A stretch of 64,000 bases of DNA from Oculina patagonica (lineage: Eukaryota). The position numbers were made by a program, and so were the translations under genes. Positions 1 to 24,967 of this stretch are shown here, piece by piece. Every line of letters begins with the position of its first letter. Position 1 is the stretch's first letter. Where the stretch lies: assembly GCF_052425735.1 (NCBI RefSeq), contig NC_135763.1:10230001-10294000 (forward strand), written 5' to 3'. The notes beneath the pieces were generated by a model. That model was not told where the DNA came from. It searched no databases and saw only the letters and a program-made list of their open reading frames with translations.

Positions 1-613
1 ACGTTTATGAAGTATTTGGTACGAAAGAGTTTTCTCCGTGGAGCAGGCCGGGGGTACTCCATATAGTGGACTATGCGGAGAGGCTCCGCCATCAAAAACA
101 CTCGAAAAGACCCGCGTCAGGTTGATGTATCTGATCTGACTTTATCGTGACTTTATTTTGGCTCTTTAGTGTTATATTTTCCTTCGTTCAATTAATGTGT
201 TTTCTGTAAATAGTGTAGAATAATAAAAAAATCTGAAATCTGAGTATTTGAAGAGGCTGACTCAAGTAAAACGTTTAGAAGGAAGATGCAGTATTTTTAC
301 CGTAGTTTTGACAAAGGGTATCATTTTCCATGTAAGGTATATAAAATGGTTAAATTTTCTGTCAAGAATAGTATTTTAAGAGATTTAAACTTCGCTAAGT
401 ACAAGGCCTCTCCCGGGAGATCCCTTAGCCGGCTTCACAACTAAACAACATGTAACGTGGGTTTACAATTGACGTGTGCTTATTGGTTAATCTTATGCTG
501 GTAGTTTATTGTTACTTGTGCCACATGTCTGATCTGGAGTGTAAGCTAAGTGAATGAAGAAAACCGATCTTGTGTGTAGTTTAGTGACGGGACGCGCGCG
601 AGAAGAGTAGACC

Positions 614-2625
614 ATGACGACAGAGATTCGAAGAAAGGTACAGTACGTTTTTAAACCCATTAATTCTTATGCAAGTGTGATTTTATCATCAAATTCTATA
701 TCATTCAATATCAAAACGGCGCCAGGCAAGCAGCAGGTGATTACAATCAAGAAATCACAATGAGAGATTGTCGTTTTGTTGTGTCAACAAGTGTTTAAAA
801 GTTACTCTGAAAAATGTAGTGTATTGAAAACATTTCAAGCTTTTTGAAATTTCCTGTTGCGAGGTAGATAAAAGCAACAGCTCAGGGGAAAAAAACCGTC
901 CGCTTTTAACGCCGACAGGCAAAAGACCAGAACCTGTTGCTTTTGCAGACAGCAGGCGGAGAAGATAATTTCCACTTTGATTCTGTAAAACTGGCCATCT
1001 TATGGTCTCTTCTTTGAACAGCGAGTCAAAGAAGGCCTCTTATTCTCAAGGAATCAAGTTGGATATACATGACTGAAGGTTTTACACCTTAGTAACCTGT
1101 CACGGCTTTGAGTGTCTTTGTATTGTACTAGCAGGGTTCAAATGGATGAATGGCGGAAAGTCACTAGTGCGTGATAAATGAGTGTTTACTGTCTCTTTCT
1201 GTTGTTGTTTACTGCAAGCTGTTTGTGCTGCTTGATTATATTTCAAACATTTTGCAACTAAAGTCACTAAAGTTTTGGTAAATAATAAAGATGGTAAATT
1301 TCAAGCTCGGTGATAAATAGTGAAGAAATTATTTAACATGACACGAGCGTGGGACAAAGAAAAATTCTGAGTCCCTGACGGGAATCGAACCCATGGCCTC
1401 CCAGATACCGGTTGGGCGCTCTAACCAACTGAGCTACGAGAGATTCATTGTGAGCTGAGCCATTTACTAGGTTTAGTCATGTTGAATAATTTCTACACTA
1501 TTTATCACCGAGCTTGAAATTTACCATCTTTATTATTCACCACACATTTGATGATTTCGACATTGCTGATCCTAGCAGTATGCAGGACGCGTGTCACATA
1601 TCACTAGTAAATGGCCTAGCTCACAACGAGTCTCTCGTAGCTCAGTTGGCTAGAGCGCCCAACCGGTATCTGGGAGACCATGGGTTCGATTTCCGTCGGG
1701 GACTCAGATTTTTTCTTTGTCCCACGCTCGTGTCATGTTGAATAATTTCTTCACTAAAGTTTTGGTGTTTCCGTAAGTTTCAGAAGACTACTTATCTTTT
1801 TGGTAAACATTAAAACGGGAAAAATCAGGTTCGCCGATTGTCTCCCCAGAGTAAAACACCTGTACTGGGACAGGGGAGGTGGGGGTGGGGGTGTGGAACT
1901 CTCCAGCGTATACTGAGTCAGTATCTCCCTTGTCCACCCTAGACGCATGATTAAACTTGCCGTCAAAAGGGAGGGAGATTGAGGATGATTTAATTTTAGG
2001 TGACCATACTATAGCCTGTAGCGCATACAGTATCCCACTACTATAGTCACATGGAAGACTCCTTTGACACTTCTTTTATTTGTTTGTAGGTTCTTAACCA
2101 CTCTATTACGGTTCTCTTAATAATAGCTGGTTTCTTAATGCTTGCGTCTTCAAGCCACCAAAGTGACAAAGAGGTACTGTATCGGCCTGTTCAATGCATT
2201 ATTATAATGAGTTATTCCTTTTTTTCGGATGCCGACATAACATCTTGATACCAACTTGCGAAGTGTGACATCGAAACCCCGGGGGGGGGTCACTTCCTGT
2301 TTGGCATGTCATGGTTTTTCGTAATGAAAGGGGGCCCGCAGCAAAAGGTAAACGAAAGGGGTGCCCCGCAAAATAGAATGAAAGGGAAGGGGTTGGACCC
2401 GGGGCGGAGCCCCCGAAAAAAACTTTGAGTATCCTCCGGGGCATCGAAATTAGCCTGTCTTTCGGTTATTTTTTTTAGGAGGAAAGTGAAGCTGAGCTTG
2501 AGCACAAAGCCCGGGTCTGGATTAATGCTCTTCTTGATCGTGTGGCCCAAAAACACGACCAGGAAAGGAAAGACCTTCAGAAAAGCCTTGAAAGCGGCGA
2601 AATCCAGATCGAGACGGAAGCCTAA
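614..2625 (+). CDS. Truncated myophilin/calponin-homology-derived small protein with signal-peptide/TM-like exon (84 aa, 3 coding exons)
   Basis: Exons 614-637 (MTTEIRRK|gtacag), 2090-2173 (VLNHSITVLLIIAGFLMLASSSHQSDKE|gtactg) and 2479-2625 (EESEAELEHKARVWINALLDRVAQKHDQERKDLQKSLESGEIQIETEA*). All phase 0, with strong polypyrimidine-AG acceptors. Exon 1 resembles MSAELARK| of the neighbouring myophilins, and exon 3 aligns ungapped to their exon 2. AATAAA at about 2860. Confidence 0.7.
1280..1756 (+). mobile_element. tRNA-headed tandem-type retroelement (256-bp unit) with inverted 5' segment and 16-bp flanking direct repeat
   Basis: Forward unit 1476-1756 has A-box TAGCTCAGTTGG, B-box GGTTCGATTTCC and a T-run. 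Inverted copy at about 1281-1473. TCACTAAAGTTTTGGT occurs at 1264-1279 and 1751-1766. Confidence 0.85.
2278..2441. mobile_element. Short non-autonomous DNA element with CCCGGG-type termini
   Basis: Termini CCCGGGGG...ACTT and GAGTATCCTCCGGGG. Similar termini at about 48-415, 22852-23401 and 31352-31735. Confidence 0.45.
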
Positions 2626-3842
2626 GCCAGGCCACTTGAAGACAATTATTAGCCAACACAAATGAACTTTACATGAAGTGGACACACCTCTTTAAATCAG
2701 GAGGCAGTTAGATAGCTCTGGAATACGTAAAGCTCGAGCAGCGCTGAAAGAACAGCAAATGAAACCATTACTTTCAATGGAGTAGCCCTTGTTTTTCCAT
2801 AATTCTTTTCCCGTTTACGGTTTTCAATCCGATCAAACACAACAGAGGAGTCCCCTCTGAATAAATATTACGTTTATCGATTCTGTTTTTAATATCTGCC
2901 AGGACGCGTTCGTTTTGGGATCAAACCGGAATACGAATAATTGGAATAATGCAAGTGAGCGTTCGTTTGGCTGCTCTTCCTATTCCGGTACATCTATTCC
3001 AGAATATTCCCAAACGAACGCGCCTCAAGTCTTTCTCGTGCCCAGAGGCCGCGATCCTTTGGTCAGCACCAAGAATAGCGATCTTTAGCCGCTTCCGGTC
3101 GTGATTGGCTATTGCAAATAGAATGGAATGAGACCGGAAGAAAGGTTATTTCGATATGACAGACGTAGAAACAACTCTGACATCAAAGTAGCCTGCGAAT
3201 ACAGCCGCCTCTCATTCGCGTCCCGCAACGAAGAGCGAATCAAACACGTGTTTCGCTCTTCGTTGCGGGACGCGAATCCCAAACTCCACAAAACGTAACC
3301 AATAAAAACACTTTTATACAAGAGAAATCGAACTCTTGATTTACATTTAATCCTGGGTTAGTGTTAATCAGCTTTCGAACAACCCGGCCCTCCAGAAGGA
3401 TCGCGGCCTTTGGGGACGAGATTGCTGCATGGGAGGCAATCCGCATGGAAAAACTGGGAAACATTGGGGAAACATGCGCGCTAGGAGTATTTGTTTCCCC
3501 GTTTTTTATGGTCTAAAACAGCAAAGCCATGTTACAAACAGTCACAAACACAAGAGTTTATTCGTACAAAACTACAATTTGCTACAAAGCTGTTTTTGTA
3601 TACAATCTAAAAAAGCAGCGATTTTTTGATTATTTCGAAAATCTTTCGCCTTGGTTAAGTTAGAAACACGTTTTCCCGGCGACCAGAAGGGGAAGTGTAA
3701 AATGACTTCTGCTTCCAAGGCTAGAAAATCAACAATTATGCAAACTATTGTACTCAAAAGTTACATGTAATCTCTTTCTTTTCTAACATTGTACTCTTGT
3801 GATCTGCCGTGACAATCTGCGTTGCGTGACTTCCACAGGGGC

Positions 3843-11605
<7,763 letters not shown>

Positions 11606-13558: not shown

Positions 13559-13759
<201 letters not shown>

Positions 13760-15712: not shown

Positions 15713-24967
<9,255 letters not shown>

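Follow-up and report, generated by a model that had tools for sequence, protein, structure and literature searches.

In a stretch of 64,000 nucleotides from the coral Oculina patagonica (assembly GCF_052425735.1, contig NC_135763.1, positions 10,230,001 to 10,294,000, hereafter 'the window'), a small three-exon gene lies on the plus strand beside genes of the calponin (myophilin) family. Our analysis supports a gene birth by partial duplication, in which a calponin fragment gave rise to a family of small, secretory-type proteins whose export is predicted from sequence. We assign a probability of about 0.65 to this explanation as a whole, that is, to a gene built from a calponin fragment and encoding a predicted small secreted peptide. 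Its parts differ in strength. That the gene is a real coding gene under selection is nearly certain, and that its third exon originates from a calponin exon encoding the start of the calponin-homology (CH) domain is highly probable.

Joined, the three exons as read from the window form an open reading frame (ORF) of 84 codons, and every exon coordinate in a preliminary description, made from the letters alone, proved exact. Exon 2 sits in the context ...tgtag/GTT...GAG/gtactg (slashes mark exon boundaries) and encodes VLNHSITVLLIIAGFLMLASSSHQSDKE, in which the hydrophobic core ITVLLIIAGFLMLA is followed by SSSHQSDKE, the putative h- and c-regions of a signal peptide. Exon 3 encodes EESEAELEHKARVWINALLDRVAQKHDQERKDLQKSLESGEIQIETEA and contains the conserved core SEAELEHKARVWI(N/D)ALLDRV. 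Exon 2 is 84 nucleotides long and in phase 0, as first described, so that its omission preserves the frame and leaves a product of 56 amino acids. The leader carries an upstream ORF of 18 codons that shares the frame of the main ORF (ATG 554-556 to TAG 608-610), within which the codons VTGRAREE-stop can be read at 584-610, again as described, and it shows partial conservation at the DNA level with Desmophyllum. We set the leader's limit at about 525, since a variant of RNA run X1 at position 565 sits 40 nucleotides from the end of its contig. Besides a divergent haplotig, C1596, the source genome contains no second copy of the gene. On this haplotig, at L014:8124-8207, the codon corresponding to TAG 608-610 reads TTG, the upstream ATG would add an N-terminal extension of 20 residues (MKKTDLVCSLVTGRAREELT-MTTEIRRK...), and exon 2 departs from that of the window by L>F and S>R.

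The N-terminus has the three-part layout of a signal peptide. Its n-region is basic (RRK, KRK or QRK), the strictly hydrophobic core spans 13-14 residues in the full-length sequences, and a small-residue stretch, (A/T)SS or VLA, follows the core in all seven sequences examined. The layout had been pointed out for the window alone and is conserved across species, as judged by a heuristic check only (basic n-region, core of 7-15 residues, small residues at -3 and -1). In Porites, merely 14 uncharged residues separate a lysine from a glutamate, a run too short for a membrane span, which argues for a cleavable signal peptide over an anchor. The N-terminus would most likely act as a signal peptide for the endoplasmic reticulum, cleaved near ASS/S and releasing a peptide of about 55 residues. 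The part beyond ASS is cysteine-free, mostly acidic and predicted to be helical, with an isoelectric point of 4.8-6.1 but of 9.2 in Porites. Judged on these sequence features, cleavage and secretion are, on balance, likely.

The alternative that survives best is an uncleaved signal anchor, which would make the product a small type II membrane protein that crosses the bilayer once, its basic N-terminus facing the cytosol and its acidic helix of CH origin facing the lumen or the cell exterior. The uncharged run extends over 22-25 residues in most orthologues, enough to permit such an anchor, and its best 19-residue window reaches a mean hydropathy of 2.0-2.5. Furthermore, AlphaFold2 draws a helix over residues 6-31, and the charges are distributed as an anchor would have them, positive on the N-terminal side and acidic on the C-terminal side. 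Against this stand the strictly hydrophobic core of just 13-14 residues with polar N-H-S before it, the Porites core bounded by charged residues 14 positions apart, the conserved (A/T)SS after the core and the name 'Secreted protein' that UniRef gives to an orthologue. We consider the anchor unlikely, with an appreciable minority chance of being right.

To follow the transcripts, four public runs were aligned to window positions 450-4450; three of them, contig runs X1, X2 and X8 from three closely related organisms, behave as RNA. Both junctions that the preliminary description had predicted are present in these contigs exactly as predicted: 637>2090 (GT..AG) in X1, at a depth of 14.2 and with 84 nucleotides on its shorter side, and in X8; and 2173>2479 (GT..AG) in all three. 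The unique intron sequence is empty of RNA in the three runs. As a positive control, the neighbouring myophilin junction 4039>4360 (CT..AC, minus strand) appears in the raw reads as well as in each of the three contig runs, at depths of 800-9900. Over exon 3, two raw poly(A)-tag reads map to the plus strand, in a library that reads myophilin on the minus strand. In a transcript contig from another coral (L023:1-1851), exons 2 and 3 and the 3' untranslated region (UTR) of the small gene are joined to the terminal exons of the myophilin gene that converges on it, which indicates that the 3' ends of the two genes overlap or abut in that species; the last part of intron 1 is still present in this contig.

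At least seven further coral sequences contain orthologues of the 84-codon ORF. In the searches, the 84-residue protein was represented by exon 3, the Desmophyllum orthologue and a transcript of another species (L024); a phmmer search with exon 3 against 1.84 billion cluster representatives gave six clusters, and a profile search gave 16 proteins. Two orthologues are annotated: KAJ7363683.1 (OS493_009846) of Desmophyllum pertusum, a hypothetical protein of 84 amino acids as annotated and 82 from the second ATG, which UniRef lists as A0A9X0CNA0 under the automatic name 'Secreted protein', and P0020, an unnamed protein of Porites evermanni. In exon 3, identity to the window amounts to 73 % for Desmophyllum and 47 % for Porites. 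The gene's description as unannotated thus holds for the ORF track of the source genome and fails for these two other coral genomes. In literature searches, neither the accessions nor the peptide came up in any paper, and the gene appears to be undescribed although it is annotated as hypothetical. The remaining orthologues are ORFs from transcript or genomic contigs. Among them, the transcript ORFs P0004, P0012 and P0016 cross the junction of exons 2 and 3 directly, and transcript L024 contains the complete spliced ORF of 84 codons, MTSETKRK/VFHPISATVLLMAFFLVLASSTNDKKSKK/EESEAELE... The AG and GT sites of exon 2 and its hydrophobic segment are kept in L015, L016, L017, L019 and L025, and orthologous loci preserve open frames along with the AG acceptors and GT donors of exons 2 and 3. 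In one of them, a retroelement with reverse transcriptase, RNase H and integrase ORFs occupies intron 2 (L017:5295-9378, minus strand), and both flanking exons have kept their splice sites and are intact.

As far as we have seen, the family is apparently restricted to stony corals (Scleractinia). Desmophyllum belongs to the suborder Vacatina and Porites to the suborder Refertina, so that the gene must be older than the split of the two main scleractinian lineages. That split has an age of the order of 250-400 million years. Across the two suborders the proteins are 55-78 % identical while synonymous sites are near saturation. Positions following S-E-x-x-L-E-x-x-A-R-x-W-x-x-x-L-x-D, in what was helix A of the CH domain, are invariant.

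Substitution patterns point at purifying selection on the coding sequence. Pairwise Nei-Gojobori comparisons of eight sequences give a ratio of nonsynonymous to synonymous rates (omega) of 0.12-0.46, with synonymous divergence (dS) from 0.44 to over 3. A codon model (GY+F3X4) fitted to the whole alignment gives an omega of 0.283, with a log-likelihood (lnL) of -1460.88 against -1492.27 at omega = 1 (twice the difference, 2dlnL, 62.8). Fitted separately, exon 2 gives 0.455 (2dlnL 10.7), exon 3 gives 0.216 (2dlnL 49.2) and the first half of exon 3 gives 0.14 (2dlnL 45.7). Among the eight coding differences listed between close relatives and the window, five are synonymous and three conservative (I14V, N52D and Q79E), where the expected synonymous share is 0.235 (binomial P 0.02). 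These results reject the reading as a transcribed pseudogene and bear out the original suggestion of selection rather than decay. None of the observations that the preliminary description had listed as refuting it was made: spliced transcripts exist, exon 2 is included, and orthologous loci keep their frame with an omega well below 1.

A relic that is transcribed with an ORF open by chance, either as a pseudogene or as a long non-coding RNA that acts, for example, through convergent transcription against the myophilin 3' end, would fit the very low expression, the intron-retaining contigs, the upstream ORF, the single contig of one species that joins the 3' UTR to myophilin exons, and the lack of a Pfam domain. 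Yet frame, splice sites and much of the protein sequence have been kept across two suborders despite near-saturated synonymous sites, and neutrality is rejected (omega 0.28, 2dlnL 63). Over the orthologues we find neither an omega around 1 nor decayed splice sites nor a disabled frame, and we hold this alternative to be very improbable.

A cytosolic microprotein is equally hard to sustain. Here exon 2 would be skipped, or targeting to the endoplasmic reticulum would fail, and the CH fragment would act as a dominant negative on the calponin paralogues or on actin; the in-frame skipping of exon 2 and the position of the gene beside its parent family speak for it. However, the skipping junction 637>2479 is absent among the junctions listed, and every spliced contig, from five sources, includes exon 2, whose consistent absence the preliminary description had named as evidence against itself. 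Exon 2 is itself under purifying selection, and the retained fragment covers a minor part of the CH profile. We know of no evidence that this CH fragment binds anything alone.

The calponin ancestry of exon 3 is visible at several levels. In a tblastn search of the whole window with the exon 3 peptide, the best two non-self matches are the first CH-domain exons of myophilin copies 2 and 1 (E 0.011 and 0.025). A pairwise BLASTP comparison with a calponin CH exon gives 14 identities in 42 positions (E 4e-6), and exon 3 is 38 % identical to a third paralogue just upstream of the window. We then compared a profile of 12 orthologous exon 3 peptides with a profile of eight calponin first-CH exons from five genomes. 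With hhalign, the two align over 41 ungapped columns (probability 97.5 %, E 5e-12, score 52.9), the final one being the last of the calponin exon. When the columns of the calponin profile were shuffled 300 times, the score averaged 8.5 (standard deviation 2.0, maximum 16.5), and the reversed alignment scored 7.7. Both exons are in phase 0 and start within two codons of each other. The ungapped likeness that the preliminary description had noted is thus beyond chance, and the profile match and common exon boundaries together indicate descent from CH-domain sequence. The retained piece of 45 residues corresponds to about positions 3-39 of the 109 in the CH profile. Its homology is detectable only against these calponins; exon 3 is a CH-derived fragment and not a CH domain. 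The calponin repeat (PF00402) is absent from the small ORF, which ends where the first CH exon formerly ended. Candidate look-alikes from the ESM Atlas were rejected, as their scores (at most 0.76) fell within the range of noise. That the likeness is convergent or accidental and exon 3 of independent origin, as its identity of only 33-43 % and the lack of matches in Pfam CH and PDB profile searches might suggest, is the least credible alternative given the hhalign score far above the shuffle maximum, the ungapped alignment to the exact exon end in the same phase with nearly the same start, the stop on the old donor, and the calponin paralogues beside the gene in all five loci that show neighbours.

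The end of the ORF retains the trace of the old splice site. Calponin first-CH exons end in GA/GTAAGT or GA/GTACGT (the latter in myophilin copy 1), and the window has GA/GACG with a stop three codons on, so that the donor is lost, as the preliminary description had stated. Read without splicing, GA/GTAAG becomes GAG TAA. The orthologues end in GAA TAA (L019) or GAA TAG (L015, from Desmophyllum), which places their stop on the former splice donor; in L019 and Desmophyllum the G of the donor would have been lost and the stop would be the rest of the donor consensus. In the lineage of the window, this stop changed from TAG to ACG, and three more codons lead to the TAA at 2623-2625.

The beginning of the ORF resembles calponin as well. 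Exon 1 of the small gene follows the pattern M-[TPA]-[ST]-E-[IT]-x-R-K/gta, and the last eight codons of calponin exon 1 follow M-[ST]-A-E-[LV]-x-R-K/gta, both in phase 0. Orthologous versions read MPSEIGRRK in Desmophyllum, MTSETKRK in L024 and MATQRK in Porites. Exon 1 is probably a homologue of those eight codons, a stretch too short to test alone, and the match fits a duplicate that carried calponin exons 1 and 2. Upstream, where the preliminary description had read a decayed MAARPR start, R-A-R in the window and R-P-A-P-K in Desmophyllum loosely recall the R-P-K or R-P-R of calponin, one codon out of register; Porites and L024 have no such trace, and that reading is weak. Exon 2 has no further copy in a genome search beyond the haplotig and no counterpart in the calponins, and is for that reason best read as exonised from the former intron 1.

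These observations suggest a sequence of steps. A neighbouring calponin/myophilin gene would have been partially duplicated in inverted orientation, the copy carrying exons 1 and 2 only. The donor after exon 2 would no longer have been spliced, so that the transcript read into the former intron and the donor consensus GA/GTAAG itself supplied the stop. A new exon of 84 nucleotides, recruited from the former intron 1, would then have inserted a hydrophobic core of 13-14 residues between the basic RRK start and the CH-derived part.

Several observations count against the reading as a calponin-fragment gene with a secreted product. The Pfam CH model (PF00307) gives no match at E <= 10 with exon 3 and its 12 orthologues and none at E <= 1 with the two full-length proteins. 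Other Pfam hits are below-cutoff noise, for example DUF4996, BESS and YajC. A PDB profile search returns no CH chain, merely chance matches to HU protein at E of about 1. In pattern searches for exon 1 we found none in L017 and only tentative candidates in L016 (MMNRGEEK/gtaagg) and L018 (MQRSTQR/gtaagt), and a pattern search of L018 did not find exon 2. The uncharged run of 22-25 residues counts here too, as does the AlphaFold2 model of the Desmophyllum orthologue, which from an alignment of six rows shows two helices at low confidence (predicted local distance difference test 60, predicted template modelling score 0.28). As for expression, contig depth is 2.5-18 for the small gene versus hundreds to thousands for myophilin, and the RNA runs diverge here from the window by about 2-5 %, as would close relatives or divergent alleles. 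One X2 contig retains the last 167 nucleotides of intron 1 before exon 2, and a second is unspliced through the exon 1 donor; contigs in two species keep the end of intron 1 in place of exon 1 splicing. Finally, the upstream ORF in the leader may dampen translation.

With only the first third of the CH domain left, the product can neither adopt the CH fold nor bind actin in the manner of one. Its strongly conserved helix at the N-terminal end of the CH-derived part, SEAELEHKARVWIDALLDRV, corresponds to helix A of the former CH domain and may carry a new extracellular or luminal function. We tentatively propose a secreted peptide, confined to the stony-coral lineage, in which this fossil helix is the active part and has an extracellular job as a signalling ligand or as a component of mucus or matrix. 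Selection would then possibly have preserved it from a time before the suborders parted, its stop having come from an old splice donor and its export signal from an exonised intron.

The surroundings of the gene match this origin. The window holds two calponin-family (myophilin) genes on the minus strand (Table 1). Copy 1 has two exons that match the Pfam CH model and a last exon with the calponin repeat (PF00402, 45.3 bits, above the Pfam cutoff). A third paralogue lies on the minus strand just upstream of the window (within genome C6:10220001-10230000), so that the small gene stands head-to-head with one calponin, tail-to-tail with the next and inverted to all three. Its tail-to-tail arrangement with copy 1, as originally noted, therefore holds, and is extended by the paralogue on the other side: the cluster has three or more tandem copies, the first and second of which flank the small gene. 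The same arrangement recurs in other corals. In all five loci that show neighbours (L015-L018 and L025), the small gene lies on the strand opposite to the adjacent calponins, and in four of them a calponin paralogue flanks it on each side. Downstream, each of L015-L018 has a calponin gene in tail-to-tail orientation; upstream, each has one calponin exon or more. In Porites (L025), the gene lies inside an annotated model of 405 amino acids that fuses two calponin paralogues; with its order CH-Calponin-CH-Calponin (L025:598-21516, minus strand), that model is probably a gene-model merge.

Other features of the region were recorded in passing. Downstream of myophilin copy 2, the calponin last exon occurs twice in succession (13565-13756 and 15716-15910, minus strand), with 78 % and 88 % identity to its counterpart in copy 1; the two may serve as alternative terminal exons or be left over from another partial duplicate. 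Intron 1 of the small gene contains, at 1264-1766, two tRNA-Thr(GGT)-like elements that form an inverted pair and have common flanks. The word depth in RNA contigs reaches thousands at this pair, which points at a highly repeated, transcribed family resembling short interspersed elements. Intron 2 contains, at about 2292-2443, a dispersed repeat with at least 40 genomic copies of 73-83 % identity.

Table 1. Coordinates of the small gene, the repeats in its first intron and the neighbouring calponin-family exons (window positions unless a contig is named).
Feature	Position	Strand	Remarks
5' leader, minimal	525..613	+	X1 contig carrying both junctions reaches back to about 525
Exon 1, coding	614..637	+	MTTEIRRK; donor gtacag; junction 637>2090 in X1 and X8
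Intron 1	638..2089	+	Unique RNA depth zero at 852-1253; repeat depth very high at 1254-1789
tRNA-Thr-like repeat head	1369-1444	-	ARAGORN
tRNA-Thr-like repeat head	1630-1705	+	ARAGORN
Exon 2, 84 nt, phase 0-0	2090..2173	+	Flanking junctions both in RNA contigs
Intron 2	2174..2478	+	Junction 2173>2479 in X1, X2 and X8; zero depth at 2192-2459
Exon 3, coding	2479..2625	+	48 codons and TAA (2623-2625); preceded by ttttag/; opens GAG...
3' UTR to first AATAAA (2860-2865)	2626..2865	+	Contigs extend to 2787 (X1) and 2837 (X2)
Peptide stretch of predicted product			SHQSDKEEESEAELEHK...
Myophilin copy 1, last exon	3846-4040 (with 3' UTR 3534..4040)	-	Convergent with small gene
Myophilin copy 1, first CH-domain exon	7169..7309	-	Pfam CH positions 3-39 of 109; tblastn
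Myophilin copy 1, exon 1	11555..11605	-	17 residues, then /gtacaa
Myophilin copy 2, first CH-domain exon	22169..22309	-	tblastn
Myophilin copy 2, exon 1	24917-24967	-	
Third paralogue, CH exon	L012:5697-5837	-	4.2 kb before window
Third paralogue, exon 1	L012:8069-8119	-	1.9 kb before window

The locus preserves an unusually complete, stepwise record of a gene born from a fragment: the parent family is adjacent, the old exon boundaries are legible, and both the fossil donor turned stop and the newly exonised, putative signal-peptide exon can still be read. Purifying selection has maintained its product in each of the two major branches of reef-building and cold-water corals. To the small secretory-type proteins that matter in mucus, calcification, symbiosis and immunity, the gene adds an undescribed member that is apparently confined to corals and whose own importance depends on where and when it is made. 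Annotation based on ORFs, and many a standard annotation too, will miss short multi-exon genes such as this one, in line with the finding of only two annotated orthologues among named proteins.

Among known systems, microProteins are truncated paralogues that interfere with their parents, such as the Id proteins or the plant LITTLE ZIPPER proteins. The small gene likewise encodes a small protein from a fragment of a larger, multi-domain paralogue. Unlike microProteins, it keeps a third of a domain in place of a complete interaction domain, and its gained export signal, the predicted hydrophobic N-terminus, would place it in another compartment, apart from its cytosolic parents. CH- and calponin-domain proteins have also been recovered from mollusc shell matrices (PMC6641155), which likewise puts calponin-family sequence in an extracellular, biomineral context. 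The analogy is a loose one: the shell proteins are full-length, with CH domain and calponin repeat, are discussed by their authors as actin-linked (PMC6641155), and are not truncated signal-peptide fusions.

The calponin, transgelin and myophilin proteins themselves (CH PF00307 with PF00402) share with exon 3 the pattern R-x-W-I-N/D...L...S-L..G.I, its phase and its 3' boundary; the end of their exon 1 resembles exon 1 of the small gene, which lies inside their cluster. By contrast, the small gene keeps about the first third of the CH domain, lacks the calponin repeat, is inverted and has a hydrophobic exon inserted, and its product is likely to occupy a different cell compartment. Closest to it are its orthologues, Desmophyllum KAJ7363683.1 and Porites P0020, which share its three exons and its neighbours. 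The Desmophyllum protein stops directly after ...IE, whereas that of the window is three codons longer, and the Porites copy has a divergent, basic C-terminus. As for the mode of origin, jingwei and Sdic of Drosophila are new genes that arose by partial duplication together with recruited sequence. The coral gene would follow the same course, combining a partial duplicate with an exonised intron, gaining a new stop and a poly(A) site in a former intron, and coming under selection afterwards. It differs from them in its very short, secretory-type product made from a cytoskeletal fragment, and in its age, being old and common to both scleractinian suborders.

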